This document shows positions 27,455 to 52,961 of a DNA stretch of 64,000 bases, piece after piece. Each line of letters begins with the position of its first letter. Positions within the stretch are counted from its first letter, which is position 1. The DNA is from Tubulanus polymorphus (lineage: Eukaryota > Animalia > Nemertea), in the NCBI RefSeq assembly GCF_964204645.1, contig NC_134030.1, positions 5,126,778 to 5,190,777 on the forward strand. Direction: 5' to 3'. The translations under genes were made by a program, and so were the position numbers. Below the pieces are notes generated by a model. It worked only from the letters and a program-made list of their open reading frames with translations, made no database searches and was not told where the DNA came from.

Positions 27455-28684
27455 TCACCGAGATTTTGTTTTGTTTGTTTTTGCTTTAATACAAATACAG
27501 CATCCGGCAAAAAATGTTACGAATCGCCTCCTGAAAACGCTTAGTGTCCCTATGTATATGAAAAAGTTAACGCAAAACACCGAATACCGCAGCGTCATAG
27601 ATACTATTTCTAATTGAAACCACACATCAGTAAGATATAAAGGTAAAGGCGTGGTGTTGTCGTTCAACAAGGTTGTGCTGTTGTAGTACATGTATTTCAG
27701 AAATGAAGGTTCCATATTCATAGCTTCGTACACAGATTTAATGCCAGAATTTGGTAACACTAGTACAATAAAGACAATAACTACAACGAGAAGAGTTTTA
27801 CTAGCCGCAGACTGATGGCGATCCATTTTTGCTCCGAGACCAGTAGATCTTTTCGCACGTGAAACAGCAGTCAACACTGATACTATTACAATCGCTATAG
27901 AAGGAAATATATCTTGGAAAACCGTTTTCAATGCTGTCATCGTTGATCTCTGGTACCAGTCACCGAAGTCAAGAAATTGACGACACGATAACCGAAGGAA
28001 TGTGTGATCGTGCCGGATTATCTTACGGAGATAAACACGCGTGTTACCAAACACGGCATCGAAGTTCATAGCATAAGACCACAATATAACAACACCTACT
28101 GCAATCCTGCGTAGAGTGACCGTGAAATACTTCATGTGAAAGAAGGGAAAACGGATTGAAACGAATCTCTCCATAGAGATCACGAGTACAATATAGTTTG
28201 AAATGAAAATACACTGATTATAAAGAAGCTTTCCGAATAAACAAGAGGGAATCCATCGTCTGGGAACATATTCGAAATAGTAATAGAAATAGTAAAATGA
28301 CGGGCATAATTTGCTATGTTTTACTTGCGTCATATAATCTACAGGACATTGTTTAGAGTATCCTAGCTGATGTAGAGTTGATCTTAGTGAAGATGGGAAA
28401 TCCTTCAGCGCGACCAGGACGACTATTTGATCCGCAAAAGCGAGAGTAATGAGATATGGGAAAGTGTAACGAACTGACTGACATTTCCTGCAACTGATCA
28501 GTAAAATGATAGTTAAAACGTTTAACACAAACCCGAGCGGAAAAATGAATATGACGCGGACATTTTTGATAAAGTATAAAACGTAATGTCCGGTTCCAAA
28601 GATTAATCTATGGGCGGGAGAATTAACGGCGTAGTAAGATATTGTAGTCGACGTGACGGCAATAGTCGTGTTATCATTATCCAT
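27455..28684 (-). CDS. Intronless class A (rhodopsin-like) GPCR, FMRFamide/peptide receptor-like orphan
   Basis: 409-aa ORF with 7 hydrophobic segments, GxxLN in TM1, LAFAD in TM2, ISMERF (DRY equivalent), VLP in TM6 and VNFFIY in TM7. Confidence 0.92.
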   Translation of the reverse strand: MDNDNTTIAVTSTTISYYAVNSPAHRLIFGTGHYVLYFIKNVRVIFIFPLGFVLNVLTIILLISCRKCQSVRYTFPYLITLAFADQIVVLVALKDFPSSLRSTLHQLGYSKQCPVDYMTQVKHSKLCPSFYYFYYYFEYVPRRWIPSCLFGKLLYNQCIFISNYIVLVISMERFVSIRFPFFHMKYFTVTLRRIAVGVVILWSYAMNFDAVFGNTRVYLRKIIRHDHTFLRLSCRQFLDFGDWYQRSTMTALKTVFQDIFPSIAIVIVSVLTAVSRAKRSTGLGAKMDRHQSAASKTLLVVVIVFIVLVLPNSGIKSVYEAMNMEPSFLKYMYYNSTTLLNDNTTPLPLYLTDVWFQLEIVSMTLRYSVFCVNFFIYIGTLSVFRRRFVTFFAGCCICIKAKTNKTKSR

Positions 28685-35534: not shown

Positions 35535-38500
35535 GTAACTCAACGTATAGTGCTGCCATCTTGCGGCTTGCGACATAGCGCGGATCACTCCGGTTTGATG
35601 ATTTGGTTGTCTTTCCTAGGTAGGGAAATTCACCGTAGGCGACTATTCTTTAGGATAGGAAAAGCAATTACGTAATCACCGAGAAAACTTGGCGTGATCG
35701 GGCAGATTTTGCGGGTGATAGGGCCTACCAGGTTACAATGCTTACACAACAAAAGATTCCATATTGACCGATTGGGTTTTTGCGAGTTCAAATTCCCGAT
35801 TCTTCTTCCGATATCTGTCAACATCAACTGGTTGATGAAACACAGATTGCAATCTCGCGGGAATTTATACGGTAACGTTCTGGTTCTAGGTCTTGAATCA
35901 ATGTTTAGGGCACACTGGTTTCATGGTCTAGGATGACATTTCAATTATGAATGTCTCATCATGAAGGGTTTGTAGCCTATCAACCTAAAATGTTTGCTTG
36001 ATCTTTTCATTCATTGTTTATTTTCTATTGATATGATCATCGCCAGAGGCAGAGAATAAGTGGTTTATTTCATGGACATTTTATTTTTATGCCTGCAAAT
36101 TACGAAAGTCCATTGAAAAAACTGATTTACGAAAAATATTTTGAAAATCTCACTTCTTCGACAACATTTCCTGGAAATGAATGATGAAACTGCGAACGTC
36201 TGTGCAGGTGGTGCTAGAACGCGCTCGTCTATCAACGCTGATGACAGCTGGGTTAACATGAAAGTACTTCAGAATCAATCGTAAACTCGTTATAATTTCC
36301 CGGAACCTGACGAGTAAATAAAAGCGTGCGAGCGCGTGCGTACATGCACATTTCACTAAACCGAGCCTAATATAATAAAGCGAACGACGAAGAACGATTA
36401 TTAAGCGATTGCAGACGACAACAACGTGAGTAAGGCAAAGTTTACTGTTGTCTTCGATAATAGAATGAGGAGCGAAGTCCGAAAATCTACTGACCCTGTA
36501 TATAGATAGATGTGTATGGTTGGATTAGTTAAGCAGTATGTGCTACCGCAATAGGAAGGTTAGTAAAGTTATTAAAATGCTCGTATTATCCCATCTTTTT
36601 ACACGTATACAATTTTGTGCAAGCGGATTAAATAGGATTAGACGAACGAAGTACTTTGATGGTACGGCGTGCCAATACAGGATTTACTCTTAGTCTTTCG
36701 GGTTGCTCAACCGCAGTTCATTTGATACTAATAAAACTGTTTAAGTCATTAATCACTTCATTATTGTTGATAACCACAGGAACATTTTGCGATGTTTTGT
36801 TTCAAATTGTCCACACAAGTCGTATGATGAAATGTGTTCTATCCACTAGAGGTGATGAACGATTTTGATGAACGATTATTAAACGCGTTGGGTGAAATTT
36901 TACTTTGTAACACGCGGACTTTCTTAAATATTGATTTAAAAAAACTATTTCGCACACACGAAAATGATTCTATGACCCACGGATGACCCTATTGAATGTC
37001 TAGTTTCTTGGCTAAATACCAAGTATATGTTATTCGCTGGAGAGTATTGCATCAGCTATGTACACCGACACTAGACAAATTCCAGATAGATTGTCAAATG
37101 GCCAAAACGTATGAACATCGATAGTGTAATCTAGAAGAGCCCAATAGAAAAACGTTTCGGAATCATATCAAGTTTATCAGAGTATTACTATTCAGGCGAC
37201 GAAAAAGTTCTTGAAATGCAGAAGAGACACTCAGAGGTATGACGCGTGTGTGATACAACATGTCATTATCTTTCTGAAGTTTCATAACATTTAAATGTGC
37301 GTTTAATGCTACCTATTAACTGATACTTAACAATGGGGAGCGGGTGCAAAACACAACGGCGTGTAAAACTCAAAAACGCTTCTCACTGTAACAGTTTAAG
37401 GCGAATTATGAAAAAACGACGTGCTCTATTCAGATAGTAATTTTGTTATCAATGCACTTTTCATGTTTTTTGTTTCTAAAATTGGTATTTGAGAGCGTTG
37501 GAAATAAGAGCACGCGTTATCCTTCACATAGATTCACCAAGGGCATGTACGCGTATAAACACACAGTTAATTTATACACGATTTTTTAAGTGGTACTTTT
37601 GTATTTCATCGGTGTTGCTGGATAAACAGACCTTGAGCAGTTGTTTTTATAAAAATTCCTGGAATATTGTTCCAATAAACGAGAGTAGAACGCATGCTAG
37701 GTCGCGTATATTCGACCTTCGTATTTTTACGCGATGTTTTTGTTCTCGTGTTACGAACACGCCTCCTCGCGATGATAGATTACGATTTTTCCTCGAATAA
37801 CTAGGCATTTCATTATACTTACATAACAAAACGCTTGATTTATTCGAACAATAACATTTACTATCTCTTTTCCCATTGGGTCAGCTGGAATTTGATAATA
37901 CACGCAGTGACACGTTAAAAACAACCTTTATGCAACGATTTTTTTTTAAACTGCTGTTCGTCCAGGGTACAGCGTTATTAACCTCGCTTTTGTAAAATTA
38001 GCCCCTGGAGTTGTTCTTTTTATTATGCATGTGAACATAAAATACGGGAATTACAGTGTACATCGTTAGAAATGATTTAAAATGTGCTCTTAGCAGTTTA
38101 TAATAACAACTGGGGTTGGTGACAGTGTATTGAAGAAAAAATAAACCACAATAGAGGATTTTGACATTTCGACTCAAATGCTATGAGCAATTTCAAAAAC
38201 AGATTTATTTTCCCAAGGGCAAATCGTCAAATGTCAAAAACCTGTGTTAGTTTGACTTAACGTATTGTGGACTTTTCTTCAACTTTTTATTTTAGTATTT
38301 TTGTGATAGGAATACGCCTCAAATTTCAGGATTCGTTTTGCTAATGTGAGTAATACGAACATGTCATCATACTAAAAAACGTTTAAAGGCCATTGTAATG
38401 ATTTGGAAGTTTCCAGTACTAAAAAATTAATACATTGTTAATCACGCGATGACCTAGTGTACTGGTGCCGATGGCTATGACGTCATTGTCACTGATCTTC

Positions 38501-39069
38501 GGTACGTGGTTTATCACTTGGTACATTCATGGTACATTGTTTTATGAGTAAGCCACTTCACATGCTGACATGGTATCTCATCGTCCGCGAGATAAGAAAT
38601 ATGTCGCCAGATTTTGAATTTTTCCTTCATGCGTGACTGTGGCCGAATTAGGCCTGATCTTTACGTCCTTGCACATATTTTCAGGTCATCGTGTCCTGAG
38701 ATGACCGATTGACCCGATGGCTTACGGGACCTGCGCAGTATTTATATTTACACAAAGCGCGGGTACAATTGGACTGTTCATTAGCATGAACTAATTGTAC
38801 TTCGATTAAATCACGAGGGGGTCAGTTATTCTGACAGTTTCGAGCAAATTAGAACGTGTAGTTGACCAAGGGATATTTTCCAGAATCAATTTTATGTTGT
38901 ACTTGTATCAGCAGGGGTTCATGTACTTCAAACATCTTCAGGTAATTGGATTTAATATCAAACAGTATGCGCAGAAGCCTCCCAGTCGATTTCTCTCTTC
39001 TAAAAGCGACCATAAGTGACATGGCGCCGCAATCCAATTTATCAGAACGAGCTTTGCAACCGAAGGAGT

Positions 39070-39106
39070 TATAAAAGAACCCTGGAAACCTATTTTCAAG
39101 TCAGTT
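39070..39106 (+). promoter_or_regulatory. Candidate TATA plus initiator for the MetE-like gene
   Basis: TATAAAA at 39070-39076 and TCAGTT at 39101-39106, with near-identical spacing to the Evx promoter. The coding ATG sits directly after a splice acceptor, implying a non-coding first exon. Confidence 0.5.
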
Positions 39107-39656
39107 ATTGTGAATGCTGGTATTATACTTTAGAGGTTAACTTTAAAAAAGAAAATACGCTATTACAAAAATTAGTTGCGGCTGCTAGTGCATATAGTAA
39201 AAAGTAAAATATGATAGATAATGATAGGAAGTATAAAATAACTTTCATGTTAACTATCAACCAGGCTTCACGTTTAATCGAAAGGCAATCAAAATCGGAA
39301 CGCCAGAAAACAGTTATCGAGATCTAAACAGTATACTTGTACAACTTGTACAGAACGTTGATAAATCAAACAGACAATCAAACATCCACTTCGGATTTCT
39401 GCCAAAATACATATAACGCGCACATAAATGCAAATATTCGGTCACTCGAATACCGTTTAACCTTTCATGGTAAGCCAACATAGATTTATGACGGTTTTCG
39501 GCATGTCGACGAGAAAAAAGTACATTATTGAACGACTCTATGTTGAAAAAAACTTGGAAACCTCTTAAGTGGTTTACATATCCTGTCCATCCTGATTTCT
39601 TTTTCCTTGGATAAATTCACTTTTGATACACACTAATCGTTATTTCTTTCTTACAG

Positions 39657-41702
39657 ATGCCGCTACAAACGACTGTCATTGGTAGTTATCCGAAACCGGA
39701 TTATCTGCAAGTTCCCGATTGGTTTGTGGACCACCATGTCCCCTCACCCAGGCATTACAATGACTTTATCAGAACCCAAGACACGACCGGTAAATATTTC
39801 TAGAATATAAAATCAAATCCACGTATTATGTGTCCGCAATGATGTCCAAATGTTTTCTCTTCTTTATAGAATTACATGCAGCCATATTGCAAGCCAAGAG
39901 TGATGTCATTCAGGATCAGATAGGGATGGGTCTGGACGTCATCACTGACGGTGAAGTCAGTCGGGAGAATTATATTCATGATTTCTGGTGGGTTTTTCAT
40001 TAACAGTGATCTCTAAATTGTCAGAATAGAAACTTAAAAGTTGTTACTCTTGTATTCGATCATATTTAATCGATTGAACGATGATTTTTTCAGTCGACAT
40101 TTGAACGGATTCGATTTCGAACGACCGGAAATGATGACGCATAACGGTCTATGCCGATTCGAGGTACCGGTCATCAATCAGAAAGTTGGTATCGGAGATG
40201 ATGAGGATTTTTGCGCTGAAGAGTGGAAAGAAGCGCAGTCGATGTCGCACAAAGCTGTCAAAATGACGTTACCCGGCCCGTTAACGATAATACATATGAC
40301 GCATACTCCAGGTCAGTGGCTATTCAGTTTATTCATCTGTCAATATACTTGACACATGCACCTGTCAACAATCAGTGAACGCAGCTATCAATCAAAAAGC
40401 TTTCAACCCATCGTAAGATTGCATTTAGTTTCAAAAAATTAATGCAAAGCGTTTAAAAACCCCAGACTATGGTCCATAATTCCTGTTGATATCCGTGTAG
40501 GAAGCAAATTTTGAATGGGACTGTTAGGGGGTTGATGGAAAGCTACCGATAAAAATAATTGATACGCGTTAAACAACTAGAAGGGAGAAACAGAGTTTGA
40601 CTTAACTTAATGAGTGATTTAGCTTCATACACAGACTTCACTGGACTTGTACCATCTTCTGAGGGTCTTCGTTTTTTTTCAAAAGTACGTAGGGCCTATA
40701 TTGTTTCATAGATTTCGGCCCCCTGTGATATAAGTTAGTTCATTTTCTTTTGGTAGTCGGAGGTATTTATAAGGATCGCAAACAGTTGAGTCTAGACCTG
40801 ACCACGGTTATAAACCATCAAGTATTAAACCTGGTAGAAGCGGGCTGTACGCATATACAGATAGACGAGCCAGTACTGGTCAGTCATCCAGATATCGCAT
40901 TAGAATATGGCATCGATCATCTAGAAAAATGTTTCGAGGTAAGCTGGTCCCTGCGTTGCCTTAAACTATCTTTAAATTCGCTATTGTATTGACGTTTAAA
41001 TAATGCCCCTTCATTGAGATACACAACCAAGTATCTGATATACAATTTCAGGGTGTGAACGATAGCGCCCAAAAGATCGTCCATCTCTGCTGCGGCTATC
41101 CACGCGCTTTAGTAAGTTAGCAAGTAGAACATGTATTCGAATGTCTTACGGAAAGTTATAGTGACCGATGAAATTCAATATAATTTTTCCTGTATTTGCA
41201 GGACGACGACGATTACCCTCGGGCAGATCGCAACGTCTACAAACTACTGGCGGATAGAGTCGACCAATCATGTTTTGACGCAGGTAATACATATTTCAGC
41301 GATTTTTGAGAGTTAGGTTATTGCGAACGATCTAATATTGTCCTTTCGCGTAAAAACTTTACAAATGGGACTGTCATCGAGCCTCTATCAAAGCTTCGGA
41401 TATATTTACTAATTCCAATCTGCTTCGTTCTTTCAGTATCTTTAGAGGATGCGCATCAACATAACGACCTTGATCTATTCGATCACTTCAAAAATGTCAA
41501 AGTCATCCTCGGAGTTGTCAAAATAGCGTGCAGTAAAGTCGAGAGCGTCCAAGAGATTAAAGAACGCGTACGGGAGGTTCTAAAACACATTCCAGCTAAA
41601 AACTTGATACTGGCGCCCGACTGCGGCCTCGGCTTCCTTCCACGCGACATCCTGCAACAAAAAGTCACCAACATGGTTCTAGCCGCGAAATCATTGCCGT
41701 GA
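39657..41702 (+). CDS. Cobalamin-independent methionine synthase-like, catalytic (C-terminal) barrel only, ~352 aa; exons 39657-39789, 39870-39987, 40094-40311, 40757-40938, 41052-41111, 41202-41283, 41437-41702
   Basis: TTVIGSYPKP, GLDVITDGEVSRENY, KMTLPGPLTI, IQIDEP, HLCCG (Zn His/Cys), SLE (Zn Glu), ILGVV and LAPDCGLG (Zn Cys). All six introns are GT-AG and phase-compatible, giving 1059 nt including the stop. Confidence 0.93.
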
Positions 41703-42568
41703 GGGGGCGCCTCGCGCGTTTTTGTAATTTTATGTCTCTGATGTTTACGCGCTTTCGCTCGTAAATTAAGGTCGATTTTTTAAGCGAATGAATCGGATCG
41801 GAACAGTGAAGCCGGTCTGGAGAATTGTTCATTGAGCTACCGCGGCATGTAGGTGTACTGATGTTGCGCAAGCCCGTAATGCTTTAAAATACTAATCGCT
41901 CAGGTGACGCGTATGCGAAACTATTTTCATCACGCATCTACGATTTAAAACGATATTTCCAGTTCTACCGAGGAAATATATACATATAAATATTTCTGCA
42001 ACTAGTCGAAACTATTGTATCAAGGCTTTACCAATCAATCCAATTCCGTATCGCGGGTGATTTTTGATTTTCGCAAACATGGCGGCAGCAATGCGTAACC
42101 AATAATGGTGCAGTATTGTCATTAGTGTTCGAACTTGTCGATGACGTCTGTCTCTGGACGAGGATATTCACCTAGCAAAACCTACTAATTGACCGGTGAT
42201 TAGAACATGATATGTGGACTTTGATTTTGATGATTTATCGCTGAACATATCGCAGCGTTACGACGTTATCTATTTTTTTTGTACTTAGACAAGAGAATCG
42301 TAATATTTCGGTGCTATTGTTTTATTTCACCTATTGTATATAGGACACCCGTATTATTTCGATTTGTATAATGATTTGTAAAGTTGATTATTATTACAGT
42401 ATTAAAATAAAAGCAAATTGTGCATTCTTTTTTTATGTATACCTTGTTTTTATTTATGTGAATTACAACAATAACATTAAATAGAATATGATATGGTCTT
42501 GCGTTTAGTGGAACAAAAATGAGCATCACCGGTAGCTTCATACATATTTCAGTTTCTCCGGTGTTCCC

Positions 42569-45395
42569 TCAGTTCTTGTTTACTGTTTCCTCCTCGGGAA
42601 CAATCGGAGCAGGTTTTTCACTAAACTGTAAATAAAACAGATGAGGACGAATTCAAATTCGCATATTTTTTCTGCGCGTCGATTTATGATGAAATGATTC
42701 TTAGAGACGAATGTAGCTCTTACGTGTTGAGCTATAGCGAATAATATGAGCACCATGATCGACGTAAGACCCATGCAGCCAAACGTCTTATGAGCACCAA
42801 TTCGAGACATCATTACGCCACCGATAAGGTGTCCGGAACCGAGTCCGAGCCCCCAATAGACTCCGTGGATTATGCCCTGCATTGTGGCAAGCGAGTCTTT
42901 CGGTACCGTCTGTATGGAGTACCGAGTCATAGACGACCACACTGCCGAAAACGTGAGCGCTGAAACGGCGAATGTAAATCTAAATTTTATAAGACAGTTA
43001 AATGCGTATATTTAGGAGAATTAAACATTTACATCGAACTTCGTTTCTAGTATAATCTTTCGATGATTGAAAGTCCGTTATAACGCCATCACTTTAAGGC
43101 CGCTACTCATTTAACGCAAACATTTTTCAGAGCACAATTATGCTCAATCTAAACCAGATTCAATGGAAATACCAAAGCCAAATTCGGTATAACGCCATGT
43201 TTTTCAGTGGTCCCAATAATGTCACCAAAAAGGACTTTTATTGTTCATTATATTACGTACCCTGTAACATCTCAGCCGGTATGACGAGCCAAGGGTCCTC
43301 TATAATAGCGTAAGTGGTAAACCTCATACAGTAACAAACAAGAGCTAGATACAGAGTTCCAATACAGCCGAATGGTTTCAATACCAGACGATCGACGAAG
43401 AAAAACATCGTGAATTCGCAAATATACGTCGTGCATATCACGATTCCGAGCAGCATTTGAGTCGCACCTGCGAATGAATGAATGAGTGATAAAAAATTCA
43501 TAACAATTCTGAAAAATTGATAATCGAAATATTACAGTAGTTTTCTCAATTTCTATAGAATTGCCGTATTGCAAGAATCTCCCCTTGCGATACAATCTGT
43601 TTTCAAAACTAATTACATTGCATTTTGTATTCTGTTTTTATAAAAGGACTGAGAGGTTTGTATCGATTATTGCTAATTGAACTTATTTTGTGTTGGAATA
43701 CTGGTGCTGACCTAAATTTTCAAGATGCCAATATAGAAATCCCCAGATGAATCCGTTACACAGTCCCATATAGAAACTGATAAACAGCCAAGACGCGTAG
43801 TGGACTGTCGTCAATATGGAGCATAATGACTGTAGATTGTGTTTATTCACTTCTCGTTTTTCGTAACCCTGAAAAAATTAAAAACCCTTAGAGAATTCGA
43901 AGTCAAGTTTCATTTCTGGTTATTGAAATGCTACCGTTTTTTATTACCTAACATTCAAATGTTTGATCGATGATACGTACTTAGTACACCACGTCACCAA
44001 GCATTCTACCGCCGATAAAATGATTGATAAAAGTTGAAAAAATGTAAAAACAAAACAGAATATAAGAAGATAAAATGACGAATCAAAGTCCAAATATGAG
44101 GCAATATAAGACAATTGATAAAAAGATCCACGATGATCTTTCGCGAACCTTAAATTTAAAGCTAAGACCGGCCAATATGGCCATGGACATACACCCTCCG
44201 AAAACGTAAAACGGCATCATATAATCACAGATATCGACTTTAGTACCACACATCACTACTTGGTGTCGCGTCATATTCAGTAAATATCCAACTGTAAATG
44301 CGCTGGAACGATCCAACAAACGGAAATTTGCGAAAATTCATTCTTGCATTCAACCATTCATTACAGACAACCAAAAATATACAATGTATGTGTCTATGTA
44401 TTTTTGATACAGCGCATTATTACTAACCTTATTCCGAAGCCTAAAGACCCCCAGGCTCTTTGGAGGCTGTATTTATGTTCGTGACCGCTGCCCAATTTAT
44501 CGATAGTACCGGCGTCTGCCAGGGCAGAGGTCGGGGCTTGTACCAATTCCCCGGCTATCACCAACAAAACTAACGTCAAAAACACTCGTTTCATATCAGC
44601 AGGCTCGTATAACCAAGACATATTCTCTTTATCATTAACCACATGAAAAAAATGATTGTACCAAGGTGTAGTGTTTATTTTAGTTTCGATGCTGTTCAGT
44701 AAATGAGTTTGACCGTGCGGCGCTAAAGTCGTTGTCGATAAGTTCGTCAATTTTCGTGCGCGATTCGCCTGGTCAATCAGTTTATCGTCAGCGATGTCGT
44801 CAAACGCCGACCGCACGATTCTATCCCAGTGAGTTACGTTGATCAGATTCGGACACTGCGTCACGGGTTTCGTCGCTGGAATAAAACCTAACGACATTTT
44901 AAACACGAGCCAGCCGATTAGAGAAATATAAAACAAAATACGCCTGAGTTTGAACCGATCAGCGATGGCACCCCACAACGGGCCACTCGGAAATCCTAAA
45001 AGTGGCCTTAGCCCGGTCACGAGCCCGATATGACTCGGTCGAAGGCCTAGTTGCTTCAGATAAATCGACATAAATGGCGTTAACGCCCCTCTTGCGCTAA
45101 AAAAGGCAAAATAGAACAATTTCGATGAAATGAGTTTGGTTTCGATTTTGATACAATCGGCCCAGTTTCCCCAGTCCATAAAATCTTCGACACTTTCTAT
45201 ACGGACGGGTTTCGCAATTTCTTGGTTCTCGTTTTGTTTCGGACAGTAAACACCCTCGGTTATAGGGCTCTCCTCCGTATCGGCGGTACCTTTACTCATC
45301 GTTTCCGCGGACGAGTTTCGACGTAATAAACGAGATTCTGGCGACGAAACGGCGAAAACAACGTTACGTACGAGTTGCGGCCTTTGCTCGAACAT
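42569..45395 (-). CDS. MFSD6: Major facilitator superfamily domain-containing protein 6-like (multi-exon)
   Basis: KLFYFAFFSARGALTPFMSIYLKQLGL, PLWGAIADRF, YSLQRAWGSLGFG, FLYWHLENL exon, ATMQGIIHGVYWGLGLGSG. Confidence 0.88.
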
Positions 45396-49741: not shown

Positions 49742-50728
49742 TCAATCGCATCTAAATTTCATGCGAATTTGTCGCCTCAATTTGCGACTAGAAATGTAAT
49801 ACAAAATGAAGTTTATACACGAGTTCGAACAAGTGAAAAAGTGCCCAAGTGCTGAAAGTTGACTCTTTTTGTTTTTTGGAACGAACCATCTTAAAGCCTT
49901 TTGGAATCCTGAAGGGAATTCGAATATTAGATACGACATGACCGCCATAAATGCTAAAATTGATGCCTGATGTTGCACGGCTGTTGAAGATGAATCTTTA
50001 CTTGAAATTATATTCCTGTTTCTTGTTGCTGTAACTAGTGATTTCACAATTACAATATTGGCAATGACCATTATGAAAAAAGGTGAGAAGCTGATCAGTC
50101 CTATATGCATTAACGTGCGAAAATCCTTTCTAACGTACGGGATCAACGTGCTACGAATCATCACAATCGTCTCCTCAAATGGACAAGCCACTGTTACATA
50201 GGAGAGTGATTGATAGTACAGACGCCATGTACACTGCGATAATGCACAAATGATTATAACCACAAAACAAGTTACTTTATAAACTTTGGTCGTCATATAA
50301 ACTCGAGCCTTGAATGGAAAAACAATAGCCACAGCCCGTTCTATACTTATCATTACTGTTATCCAGTTTCTCATCATTTTTGCAGTTGGATTCACCATTA
50401 AATAGATCAAGTACGCTTCGATTTCGCGGTCCTTTCTCATGAATATTCCCGCTCCCAATCGCGACCACTCGTACAGATACCGAATCGGTCGGTCTATGAC
50501 CATTATGATGAGGTAGTTATTTTCCACGAAGGCGAGAATCCGCAAAATAGTGAAAGTCGGAACGTTTGAATTGTAGGACGACATGACGTAAATCGTCAAT
50601 GAATTCAGAACCATTCCGGCGATTGAGACTGGTAAAATAGCATAAACATTAAACAACCATTGCACGTATGTAGCATGGATAAACTTGCAATTTCTTCTGG
50701 TTGAATTTCCTGTCTCTGGCATGTTCAA
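49742..50728 (-). CDS. Intronless class A GPCR, peptide/chemoreceptor-like orphan, tandem copy 1
   Basis: 328 aa, 7 TM segments, ISIERA, FEFP, INFILY. Confidence 0.92.
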   Translation of the reverse strand: MNMPETGNSTRRNCKFIHATYVQWLFNVYAILPVSIAGMVLNSLTIYVMSSYNSNVPTFTILRILAFVENNYLIIMVIDRPIRYLYEWSRLGAGIFMRKDREIEAYLIYLMVNPTAKMMRNWITVMISIERAVAIVFPFKARVYMTTKVYKVTCFVVIIICALSQCTWRLYYQSLSYVTVACPFEETIVMIRSTLIPYVRKDFRTLMHIGLISFSPFFIMVIANIVIVKSLVTATRNRNIISSKDSSSTAVQHQASILAFMAVMSYLIFEFPSGFQKALRWFVPKNKKSQLSALGHFFTCSNSCINFILYYISSRKLRRQIRMKFRCD

Positions 50729-51980: not shown

Positions 51981-52961
51981 TCATTTGCATCTCAATTTTA
52001 CTCGAACTTGTTGCCTCAATTTCTTACTAGAGATGCAATACAAAATGAAATTCATACACGAATTTGAAGAAGTGAGAAGGTGTCCGAGTGAAGCAAGTTG
52101 GGGGTATTTGTTTTTTTGAATGAACTTACTAAACGCCTTTTCAAATCCTGAAGGGAATTCGAATAATAAATATGACATCACAGCTACAAATGCTAAAATT
52201 GATGCTTGATGTTGTACAGCAGCTGAGGATGAATCTTTACTTGAAATCGTATTCCTGTTTCTTGTTGCTATGAACAGTGATCTAATAATTATGATATCCG
52301 CAATGGCCATTATGAAAAAAGGTGAGAAGCTGATCAGTCCTATATGCATTAACGCGGGAAAATCTTTATTTACGTACGGAATACTTAATGAACGAGATAT
52401 CGAGATTTTCTCCTCAAACGGACAAAGCACCATTTTATAGATTAGGGACTTATAGTAAAGACGCCAACTACATTGCGATAATGCACAAACAATGATAACT
52501 ACAGTACAGATCATTTTGCATACTCGGGTCGTCATATAAACTCGAGCCTTGAATGGAAAAACAATAGCCACAGCCCGTTCTACACTGATCATTACTGTTA
52601 TCCAGTTTCTTGTCATTTTTACAGTTGGATTTACCCCATAATGGATCAAAAACGCTCCAATTTCGGGGTCTTCTCTCATGAATATTCCCTCTCCCAACCG
52701 CGACCACTCGTACAGATACCGAATCGGTCGGTTTATGGCCCAGATGATCAAAAATATATTTTCCACGAAGGCGAGAATTCGTAAAATAGTGAAAGTCGGA
52801 ACGTTTGAATTGTAGGACGACAACACGTAGATCGTTAACGAATTCAGAATAATTCCGGCGATTGAGACTGGTAAAATAGCATAAATATTAAACAACCATT
52901 TCACGTATGTAGCGTGGATCAACTTGCAATTTCTACCAGTAACATTCCCCGTATTAAGCAT
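51981..52961 (-). CDS. Intronless class A GPCR, tandem copy 2 (paralogue of 49742-50728)
   Basis: 326 aa, colinear and highly similar to copy 1; ISVERA, MNFILY. Confidence 0.92.
   Translation of the reverse strand: MLNTGNVTGRNCKLIHATYVKWLFNIYAILPVSIAGIILNSLTIYVLSSYNSNVPTFTILRILAFVENIFLIIWAINRPIRYLYEWSRLGEGIFMREDPEIGAFLIHYGVNPTVKMTRNWITVMISVERAVAIVFPFKARVYMTTRVCKMICTVVIIVCALSQCSWRLYYKSLIYKMVLCPFEEKISISRSLSIPYVNKDFPALMHIGLISFSPFFIMAIADIIIIRSLFIATRNRNTISSKDSSSAAVQHQASILAFVAVMSYLLFEFPSGFEKAFSKFIQKNKYPQLASLGHLLTSSNSCMNFILYCISSKKLRQQVRVKLRCK

Follow-up and report, generated by a model that had tools for sequence, protein, structure and literature searches.

The window examined here is a 64,000-nucleotide stretch of the genome of the nemertean Tubulanus polymorphus, and we describe positions 39657 to 41702 (plus strand) together with the flanks. 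Seven coding exons lie between these positions, each border having the form AG-exon-GT, and they sum to 1059 nt, which is 352 codons and the stop. RefSeq lists the gene as XP_074652062.1, and the database protein (P0001) equals the 352-amino-acid (aa) model with seven extra residues at the N terminus. MetE signatures occur in the model at residues 8 (IGS), 190 (IQIDEP), 228 (HLC), 266 (SLE), and 325 (PDCG). A sequence-only reading of this DNA had proposed seven exons, 352 aa, and these five signatures; borders, frame, and length all checked, and every signature is present.

Residue numbers given below follow P0001. Coding exon 1 (39657 to 39789, plus strand, 133 nt) opens with an ATG conserved as the start with homologues, has the same length in sea urchin and Owenia, and carries the Ser of IGS (S17) at 39684 to 39686. 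Coding exon 2 (39870 to 39987, plus strand, 118 nt) encodes the homocysteine amino-group ligand E80 (39953 to 39955), followed by ENY, the counterpart of DMV in MetE. A long beta-hairpin is encoded by coding exon 3 (40094 to 40311, plus strand, 218 nt; H107 at 40140 to 40142), and IQIDEP by coding exon 4 (40757 to 40938, plus strand, 182 nt), which includes D200 (40864 to 40866) and S206 (40882 to 40884). The HLC zinc ligands are in coding exon 5 (41052 to 41111, plus strand, 60 nt), with His at 41082 to 41084 and Cys at 41088 to 41090. Coding exon 6 (41202 to 41283, plus strand, 82 nt) is followed by coding exon 7 (41437 to 41702, plus strand, 266 nt including the TGA stop), which supplies the remaining zinc ligands, Glu of SLE (41445 to 41447) and Cys of PDCG (41622 to 41624).

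Public sequencing runs show the gene to be expressed and spliced, the junction check that the sequence-only reading had called for. A 1958-nt contig from run X5 is without exactly the six modelled introns, and four of the six are absent in run X6; such splice joints numbered 0 in DNA runs X1 and X2, the contigs of which read through intron sequence. Runs X5 and X6 are taken as RNA because their contigs are spliced (no run carried an RNA label); this RNA support is drawn from a single sample in one study, and the contigs are silent on expression level and tissue.

Because ATG 39657 comes straight after a 3' splice site, and an extra 5' exon is present in the RNA contigs, the gene has eight exons, not seven, and seven introns in total. 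The X5 contig has a 175-nt loose end before 39655, and the same 30 letters are found in X6; a unique exact match at 36527 to 36556 places this leader at 36382 to 36558 (plus strand), with GT at 36559 and with a 5' limit set by the end of the RNA contig, not by a mapped transcription start. The first intron (36559 to 39656, plus strand, 3098 nt) runs from GT to AG. The leader contains three short out-of-frame upstream open reading frames (ATG 36465, 36510, and 36516), an in-frame TAG at 36526 to 36528, and an in-frame ATG at 36538, which is the RefSeq start and adds MCYRNRK. A TATA/Inr promoter had been suggested just upstream of 39657, but that stretch is intronic, because the 5' exon is joined across the 3.1-kb intron.

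The 3' untranslated region (41703 to 42423, plus strand) extends to the RNA contig end and has ATTAAA at 42401, about 20 nt before that end. Compared with another individual, four of four coding differences were synonymous, and there were at least 14 differences in introns among the rows listed; the gene is under purifying selection within the species. Facing it on the minus strand, in convergent orientation, is a putative transporter-like gene (large open reading frames [ORFs] at 42580 to 42942 and 44394 to 45395). By eye, neighboring ORFs are animal-like, e.g., receptor-like and leucine-rich-repeat ORFs.

For assignment to a family, exons were searched individually, whole-protein searches used P0001, and exons were joined only for local checks. 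Exon-by-exon matches to Pfam Meth_synt_2 were collinear (profile positions 35 to 69, 72 to 136, 144 to 179, and 239 to 323), with exon 7 alone reaching 51 bits; exons 1, 5, and 6 lack the length for a score of their own. The whole protein matched PF01717 (Meth_synt_2) at 128.1 bits (cut-off, 21) over profile positions 2 to 323 of 324. Every curated methionine-synthase model scored below its cut-off, from TIGR01371 (MetE; 104 bits versus 929.95) to the best NCBIfam model, NF003317 (340-aa "methionine synthase"; 194 versus 406), the second-best "methionine synthase" model, NF006589 (168 versus 392), NF002119 (114 versus 258), and NF002272 (76 versus 399). We take NF003317, NF002119, and NF002272 to be models of MesA, MesB, and MesC, which is an assumption. 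The protein thus lies outside the characterized families, as had been proposed.

An AlphaFold model (pLDDT 95.1) predicts a (beta-alpha)8 barrel with a long beta2-alpha2 hairpin (strands 94 to 107 and 111 to 124). Its best match among solved structures is 3RPD (MesD with selenomethionine bound; TM 0.84/0.87), and MetE C-terminal barrels align to it with a TM of about 0.78. Zinc and homocysteine-binding residues have been listed for MetE and MesD (PMC7857596). The zinc ligands (H235, C237, E275, and C334) are invariant in 50/50 family members and nearly so in 151, and E80 and D200, which hold the homocysteine amino group, are likewise invariant in 50/50. The carboxyl-holding S17 is Ser or Ala in the family, with Ala in about half. 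By alignment, S17, E80, and D200 are S433, E484, and D599 of Escherichia coli MetE. The gene encodes a stand-alone MetE-type catalytic barrel with all zinc and homocysteine residues.

The pterin-binding determinants of Thermotoga maritima MetE are DMV, Trp539, and Glu583 (PMC539065). DMV is replaced by ENY in the family, including Tubulanus; the pterin-stacking Trp539 is replaced by Thr or Ser in the family and by Met159 in Tubulanus; and the pterin-binding Glu583 is replaced by Arg in the family and by S206 in Tubulanus. Position 107 is Arg in 146/151 rows and His in Tubulanus (R107H), and position 206 is Arg in 144/151 rows and Ser in Tubulanus (R206S), making Tubulanus the only named animal without the two near-invariant arginines. 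The Tubulanus orthologue may differ in substrate, because the lost arginines map by homology to the methyl-donor site of MetE.

[quoted passage not shown] An upstream exon was found, but no N-terminal barrel is encoded, because the spliced leader has the in-frame stop noted above. A profile scan of the 268-Mb genome gave no match to Meth_synt_1, and the same search was positive in 8 control genomes. A weak Meth_synt_1 match at residues 115 to 208 of the protein overlaps that to Meth_synt_2 and is due to the two barrels being homologous.

Orthologues (45 to 54% identity) were found in corals, a hydroid, echinoderms, hemichordates, amphioxus, a brachiopod, an annelid, and nemerteans, in line with the earlier remark that some other marine invertebrates have MetE-like annotations. 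Marine bacterial proteins are 46 to 49% identical, nearly as close as those of other animals, and such relatives are common in marine bacteria (at least 591 confirmed stretches). A "B12-independent methionine synthase 2" of Scrippsiella is 47% identical. In a mixture-model tree, the named animal rows and five further rows formed one clade (support, 85/92), FastTree support for the animal clan was 99%, and the split between the named animals and the named bacterial and protist rows was present in all of 200 bootstrap trees (100%). Each of Cnidaria, Bilateria, Ambulacraria, and Nemertea was recovered as well. The Tubulanus protein was sister to one further transcript row, then Lineus, within Bilateria. 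Isoforms, the partial isoform P0003, a 542-aa coral model, and most near-identical bacterial rows were left out of the mixture-model tree, which is unrooted.

All six internal introns are common in position and phase to amphioxus, sea urchin, an annelid, or another nemertean, and one of the six is also common to Stylophora (coral) and Hydractinia (hydroid). Because the introns are shared and the animal proteins form one clade shaped like the animal tree, this is an old, vertically inherited animal gene. Animals have carried it, introns included, since before the cnidarian-bilaterian split, and the claim of vertical descent reaches back as far as the ancestor of those two groups. The same phylogeny and intron comparison do not support the earlier suggestion of a horizontal transfer later domesticated with six introns, as far as this lineage is concerned. 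A literature search returned nothing relevant on the animal family; the presence of the gene is already in databases.

Neighborhoods of the bacterial relatives were surveyed at 65 loci from 34 lineages, a Roseovarius isolate among them. In 5 lineages a PotABCD/PhnT2-like importer operon ends with the MetE-like gene, and transporter genes of that kind are near it in 10. PhnW is found no more than 6 kb away in 4 lineages, as are PhnY and PhnA in one (all above curated cut-offs); the omega-aminotransferase AptA, alanine dehydrogenase, and methylmalonate-semialdehyde dehydrogenase are near the gene in other lineages, and a PehA-like ester hydrolase adjoins it in 4. An ABC-importer/catabolic neighborhood is seen in about a third of the bacterial lineages, with content varying between lineages; in some, the catabolic genes are those for aminoethylphosphonate or omega-amino acids. 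Neither a corrinoid protein nor MesX was found among the annotated recurrent neighbor clusters of the 65 loci. The first two bacterial neighborhoods inspected had shown no pattern; the 65-locus survey did.

The Tubulanus genome contains MetH and many S-methyl_trans (BHMT-like) matches. PEP mutase gave no match in a search of the worm genome, and there is thus no sign that the worm itself makes aminoethylphosphonate. MesX (PF08908, DUF1852) also gave no match in the worm genome, in a search in which the control genomes were silent too. A single-barrel "Mes-like" gene of Phaeobacter inhibens, which may or may not belong to this clade, had no phenotype in a lag-phase test with DMSP (PMC12366255), a point against the donor favored below. 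Dinoflagellates with single-barrel metE stay B12 auxotrophs (PMC11197592); that those with this gene type still need B12 via MetH is compatible with a corrinoid or a non-corrinoid donor.

The explanation that we favor, and consider reasonably probable, is a genuine expressed nuclear gene for a cytosolic stand-alone MetE-type barrel that methylates homocysteine, with a small onium compound as the favored donor. The enzyme would bind homocysteine on zinc as a thiolate, and the zinc-bound homocysteine would be methylated to methionine as in MetE and core methionine synthases; from that analogy, we infer homocysteine methylation by the Tubulanus enzyme. Methyl-tetrahydrofolate would not be usable in the manner of MetE, because the enzyme has neither the second barrel nor the residues that bind the pterin. 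The donor would instead be a small onium compound, methylated on N or S and bearing an anionic head group, that comes from diet or osmolyte pools; trimethyl-aminoethylphosphonate, betaines, and sulfonium compounds, DMSP among them, are examples. Such a donor is favored because importer and catabolic genes lie beside the gene in about a third of the bacterial lineages and the annotated recurrent neighbors include no corrinoid protein or MesX, which lends some support to the sulfonium or betaine donor proposed earlier. The donor is the weakest step, its basis being bacterial gene neighborhoods, a pattern that may fail to transfer to animals. Zinc-thiolate chemistry would strip only the first methyl of a quaternary amine and so does not by itself feed the adjacent aminotransferases. 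The enzyme would constitute a BHMT-like salvage or demethylation route beside the MetH and BHMT-type enzymes of the worm.

Three alternatives retain methionine synthesis but differ in the methyl donor or partner. A corrinoid-dependent core enzyme like MesA, MesB, or MesC would take its methyl group from methylcobalamin or a B12-binding protein, and characterized single-barrel enzymes do use methylcobalamin in vitro (PMC7005905, PMC7857596). The worm has B12 metabolism (MetH is present) and the best NCBIfam profile is NF003317, but scores are under half of the cut-offs (194/406, 114/258, and 76/399), MesA to MesC occur only in anaerobes with methanogenesis or the Wood-Ljungdahl pathway, and no corrinoid protein is among the annotated recurrent neighbors at the 65 bacterial loci. 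Animals keep cobalamin on dedicated chaperones, which we also count against this alternative, and we judge it distinctly unlikely. [quoted passage not shown] It is nevertheless very unlikely, given the replacement of DMV, Trp539, and Glu583 alike, a score of 104 bits against the 930-bit MetE cut-off, the persistent B12 auxotrophy of dinoflagellates with single-barrel metE, and the failure to find Meth_synt_1 in the 268-Mb genome by a search positive in 8 controls; the split form was rejected. A MesD-type oxygen-dependent synthase needing a MesX-like partner agrees with the aerobic habit of family carriers and with 3RPD being both the closest solved structure and the best PDB sequence match. 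The structural alignment with 3RPD, though, shows only about 26% identity, the score against NF006589, the second-best "methionine synthase" model, is 168 versus 392, PF08908 is without a match in the genome (controls silent), and MesX is missing from the annotated recurrent bacterial neighbors, leaving this alternative highly improbable.

Two further alternatives concern the reaction and the origin of the gene. The protein might not be a methionine synthase at all. Its zinc barrel might instead add an alkyl group to some other thiol or selenol, or take one off, or might work backwards to demethylate methionine-like compounds, in a pathway separate from homocysteine remethylation. The activity of the clade is predicted from sequence, the gene is redundant with MetH and the many BHMT-like matches in the genome, its bacterial neighbors are catabolic and not methionine-biosynthesis genes, and Ala takes the place of the carboxylate-binding Ser in about half of the family. 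The two residues that contact the alpha-amino group of bound homocysteine or methionine in MetE and MesD, Glu and Asp, are, however, invariant, and the closest solved structure has selenomethionine in that pocket; we regard this alternative as unlikely. Bacterial contamination or recent horizontal transfer into the worm would fit the identity of marine bacterial proteins (46 to 49%, near that of other animals), but seven spliceosomal introns are removed in RNA, the gene sits on a 23-Mb contig among animal-like ORFs, intron positions are common to deuterostomes and cnidarians, and the animal proteins form one clade. Splicing, shared introns, and the animal clade refute it, and its probability is practically nil.

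A stand-alone zinc barrel using an onium donor thus remains the preferred explanation, and it has a bolder form that we hold to be possible, if rather doubtful. The animal, protist, and marine-bacterial clade would be a fifth kind of core methionine synthase with a direct onium donor, imported or dietary (N,N,N-trimethyl-2-aminoethylphosphonate, beta-alanine betaine, taurine betaine, or DMSP, for example), the two arginines would grip the head group at the former folate site, and Tubulanus would have a shifted donor. If true, marine invertebrates would own a folate- and B12-independent route from abundant methylated metabolites to methionine that was lost in vertebrates. In textbook accounts, animals remethylate homocysteine in two ways, by MetH and by BHMT. 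A MetE-type zinc barrel is a third candidate remethylation enzyme, ancient and conserved in many marine invertebrate phyla. The gene is annotated by similarity only, with a RefSeq methyltetrahydropteroyltriglutamate name that the sequence contradicts, and some of its marine bacterial relatives lie in phosphonate or osmolyte catabolic clusters. Knowing the donor would close a gap in the picture of animal one-carbon metabolism, and perhaps also in that of how methyl groups and phosphonates cycle in the sea.

Among known systems, MesD (3RPD of Shewanella; ACIAD3523 of Acinetobacter baylyi) is alike in being a single barrel of ~350 aa (TM 0.84/0.87) from aerobic organisms with the same four zinc ligands and the same Ser/Glu/Asp pocket, which selenomethionine occupies in 3RPD; it is also without the DMV, Trp, and Glu folate determinants of MetE. 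It differs in having TNCG in 3RPD where Tubulanus has PDCG, in its MesX partner (for which our search was negative but its controls silent), and in gene setting, as the bacterial relatives of the animal gene are in importer/catabolic clusters and not beside DUF1852. Membership of MesD was set at about 55% identity or more to ACIAD3523 by Price et al. 2021 (PMC7857596); identity here is about 26%, measured on 3RPD in place of ACIAD3523. The C-terminal barrel of canonical MetE/Met6 (EC 2.1.1.14; 1T7L, 1XPG, 3PPC, and 1U1H) is homologous (E values of 1e-20 to 5e-22; TM about 0.78) and has the same motifs for binding zinc and homocysteine, IQIDEP and PDCG among them, whereas the Tubulanus protein is half the size, is without the N-terminal barrel, and has its pterin residues replaced. 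MesA, MesB, and MesC (methanogens, Dehalococcoides, and Wood-Ljungdahl archaea) share the single barrel and folate independence, but they occur in strict anaerobes only and depend on corrinoid proteins, unlike the animal setting, and all Tubulanus scores are under half of their cut-offs.

BHMT, BHMT2, and MmuM (S-methyl_trans) belong to a Pfam family other than Meth_synt_2; they would resemble the Tubulanus enzyme in the proposed cofactor-free chemistry, in which a zinc-homocysteine thiolate attacks an onium methyl (of betaine, S-methylmethionine, or DMSP). The single-barrel "metE" of dinoflagellates and other marine protists (PMC11197592) is of the same length class and in the same family tree, but in a clade separate from that of the animals, and some protist forms are fused to PKS, ACP, or oxidoreductase domains, while the animal proteins stand alone; the MetE fusion of Phaeocystis (PMC10861871) is another protist form, which may or may not belong to this clade. 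Within the animal clade of short MetE-like proteins, Tubulanus polymorphus has its place by tree position and shared introns, but it departs from that clade at Arg107 and Arg206.

The MetE-like gene proposed at 39657-41702 of the window from sequence alone is real. Seven coding exons on the forward strand (39657-39789, opening with the ATG at 39657; 39870-39987; 40094-40311; 40757-40938; 41052-41111; 41202-41283; and 41437-41702) have canonical AG/GT splice borders throughout, sum to 1059 nt (352 codons plus TGA) and encode the motifs IGS, IQIDEP, HLC, SLE and PDCG. Exons were searched singly and matched Pfam Meth_synt_2 collinearly (exon 7 alone, 51 bits), and whole-protein analyses were run on the database protein P0001 (RefSeq XP_074652062.1, nemertean Tubulanus polymorphus; residue numbering follows this protein). 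P0001 (359 aa), retrieved with exon 7 from protein representatives, is the 352-aa model plus seven N-terminal residues and covers the entire Meth_synt_2 profile (128 bits). A six-frame scan of the 268-Mb Tubulanus genome found this gene as the sole Meth_synt_2 locus and no match to Meth_synt_1.

Two public sequencing runs, X1 and X2, behave as DNA (contigs cross intron sequence, with no splice joints); spliced contigs occur in X5 and X6, both from a single sample and study (2014). A 1958-nt X5 contig links all seven exons with exactly the six modelled introns removed and ends at 42423, ~20 nt past an ATTAAA signal. Its 5′ end carries an extra 175 nt that do not adjoin 39657 and map uniquely to 36382-36558 (forward strand), a segment closed by GT; a leader exon and a 3098-nt intron therefore lie ahead of the exon that carries the ATG. 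This shifts the promoter upstream by 3.3 kb or more from the TATA/Inr position assigned to it previously, the leader's 5′ limit being that of the RNA contig rather than the true transcription start. The leader holds an in-frame TAG (36526-36528) followed by an in-frame ATG at 36538, the RefSeq start; the N-termini of other animals and the 133-nt first coding exon agree with the ATG at 39657. An upstream exon thus exists, but its TAG means that the transcript cannot encode an N-terminal barrel, and together with the genome scan this bears out the predicted absence of that domain. The spliced leader also contains three short upstream open reading frames (36465-36555; 12 to 14 codons, in other frames than the main one), which could influence translation. 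Within the first intron, X1 and X2 contigs break with loose ends at ~38150-38200, which suggests a repeat, or an indel that differs between individuals. All four coding differences from another individual (X1) are synonymous, and the listed rows of the same comparison include fourteen intron differences, indicating purifying selection.

By eye, the large neighboring open reading frames resemble normal animal genes: single-exon receptor-like genes, a gene for a leucine-rich-repeat protein, and one transporter-like and one cyclophilin-like gene. The transporter-like gene (42580-45395, reverse strand; multi-exon, membrane-protein-like reading frames) converges on the MetE-like gene; the nearest large transporter-like frame starts ~160 nt beyond the 3′ untranslated region, and X5 shows a minus-strand intron at 42625-42724. 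Single-exon receptor-like frames with several membrane-spanning stretches lie at 27455-28684, 49742-50728 and 51981-52961 (all reverse strand), the latter two being close paralogues in tandem.

Word searches retrieved relatives 45-54% identical from corals (Pocillopora, Stylophora, Oculina), Hydractinia, echinoderms (sea urchins, starfish, brittle star), three hemichordates, three amphioxus species, Lingula, Owenia and the nemertean Lineus, in line with the expectation of homologues in other marine invertebrates. The same searches also retrieved marine bacterial proteins in large numbers, at 46-49% identity, along with a dinoflagellate protein named “B12-independent methionine synthase 2”; the best 120 matches listed included no vertebrate, arthropod, nematode or mollusc. 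At least two MetE-like paralogues are present in each of hemichordates, amphioxus, Lineus and Lingula. Two Pocillopora gene models with several Meth_synt_2 stretches (P0157, 542 aa; P0285, 564 aa) are probably adjacent copies fused by annotation; the same species has a normal 352-aa form (P0284).

In an unrooted, mixture-model maximum likelihood tree (76 rows), every named animal protein groups with five unnamed transcript-like rows in a single clade (support 85/92) that divides into Cnidaria and Bilateria. Within it, Ambulacraria (97/90), echinoderms, hemichordates, Nemertea, and Lingula plus Owenia were recovered, the sole misplaced group being amphioxus, with the spiralians; named animals stood apart from named bacteria and protists in 200/200 bootstrap trees. 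Introns were scored by alignment column and phase in seven orthologues mapped exactly onto genomic loci. All six internal Tubulanus introns recur in other bilaterians (five in sea urchin, six in amphioxus), and one of them, a phase-0 intron at column 262, is shared with Stylophora and Hydractinia. The shared introns and the animal clade place the gene, with at least one intron, in the cnidarian-bilaterian ancestor, with vertical inheritance since. The sequence-only reading was right in its observation, with the gene model now extended, and only partly right in its interpretation, in which the gene was possibly transferred and later domesticated with six introns. Since the tree is unrooted, it fits an earlier transfer to stem animals as well as descent from an early eukaryote.

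The AlphaFold model (50 family members as input) is of high confidence (pLDDT, 95.1) and shows a (beta-alpha)8 barrel that includes the long MetE hairpin. The zinc- and amino-acid-binding residues that Price et al. (PMC7857596) list for MetE and MesD align with H235, C237, E275, C334, S17, E80 and D200; all are invariant across the family except position 17 (Ser or Ala). By homology, this conserved pocket would hold homocysteine as a zinc thiolate for methylation. H107 (40140-40142, hairpin) and S206 (40882-40884, helix alpha4A) replace arginines kept in 146/151 and 144/151 family rows, respectively, at positions that, by homology with MetE, would form part of the methyl-donor site. Among named animals, Tubulanus alone has both replaced, and its gene is expressed and constrained despite their loss; the enzyme may have changed its methyl donor.

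Bacterial relatives (at least 591 confirmed stretches in species-representative genomes) were surveyed for gene neighborhoods drawn from the best 80 loci, nearly all in marine metagenome-assembled or single-cell genomes (65 loci surveyed; 34 lineages at 70% identity). The gene ends a PotABCD/PhnT2-like ABC-importer operon in 5/34 lineages, and such transporter genes lie ≤4 genes away in 10/34. Above curated cutoffs and within 6 kb were 2-aminoethylphosphonate-pyruvate transaminase PhnW in four lineages (loci L019, L036, L040, L045, L086 and L089-L093) and phosphonoacetaldehyde dehydrogenase (PhnY) with phosphonoacetate hydrolase (PhnA) in one, all enzymes of 2-aminoethylphosphonate degradation. 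Other lineages have omega-aminotransferase AptA with alanine dehydrogenase and methylmalonate-semialdehyde dehydrogenase nearby, and a PehA-like phosphoric/sulfuric ester hydrolase directly adjoins the gene in four. Common to these neighborhoods is the uptake and degradation of small amino compounds bearing anionic head groups. No corrinoid or MesX protein was among the recurrent neighbor clusters annotated at the 65 loci, and the papers searched on accessory genes of 2-aminoethylphosphonate clusters make no mention of a MetE-like gene.

N-methylated forms of such compounds are unusable by transaminases, as the phosphonate literature records for N-methyl and trimethyl aminoethylphosphonate. 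A zinc-thiolate methyltransferase moving a methyl group from an anionic-head-group onium compound onto homocysteine would fit both these importer and catabolic neighbors and the pair of near-invariant arginines in what was once the folate site. Backed in about a third of the bacterial lineages and carried to animals by homology alone, this donor is a tentative, rather doubtful proposal within an overall reading that we consider somewhat probable. The animal presence of the gene was already visible in RefSeq and is not new; we found no literature discussing the animal family or assaying any clade member. The gene is best classed with the known single-barrel MetE-like methyltransferases, as a variant ancient in animals.

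Among solved structures, the model best matches the selenomethionine-bound MesD core methionine synthase 3RPD (TM, 0.84/0.87); MetE C-terminal barrels come next, at about 0.78. In Thermotoga maritima MetE, the pterin is held by a DMV turn, Trp539 and Glu583 (PMC539065); the corresponding family residues are ENY, Thr/Ser and Arg, and those of Tubulanus are ENY, Met and Ser. With these determinants replaced and every curated NCBIfam methionine synthase model scoring below half of its cutoff, canonical MetE identity was rejected and no curated single-barrel model fits. The protein is a member of the Meth_synt_2 superfamily, and the RefSeq name of P0001 (5-methyltetrahydropteroyltriglutamate--homocysteine methyltransferase-like) should not be taken as a functional statement. 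Dinoflagellates with single-barrel metE stay B12 auxotrophs (PMC11197592), consistent with a non-folate-type enzyme. The Tubulanus genome also carries MetH (contig C1, 19,357,858-19,398,560, forward strand; S-methyl_trans and Met_synt_B12 exon matches over ~40 kb) and many S-methyl_trans (BHMT/homocysteine methyltransferase-type) matches, at C61 (about 52-54 kb), C9 (9.726-9.740 Mb), C5 (22.337-22.340 Mb) and, in a dense run of near-identical repeats that looks like a tandem array, C4 (about 19.85-20.69 Mb); such a BHMT-like expansion, if real, would bear on the animal's methyl-group metabolism. With MetH and BHMT-like genes in the same genome, the MetE-like enzyme adds to the textbook routes rather than replacing them.
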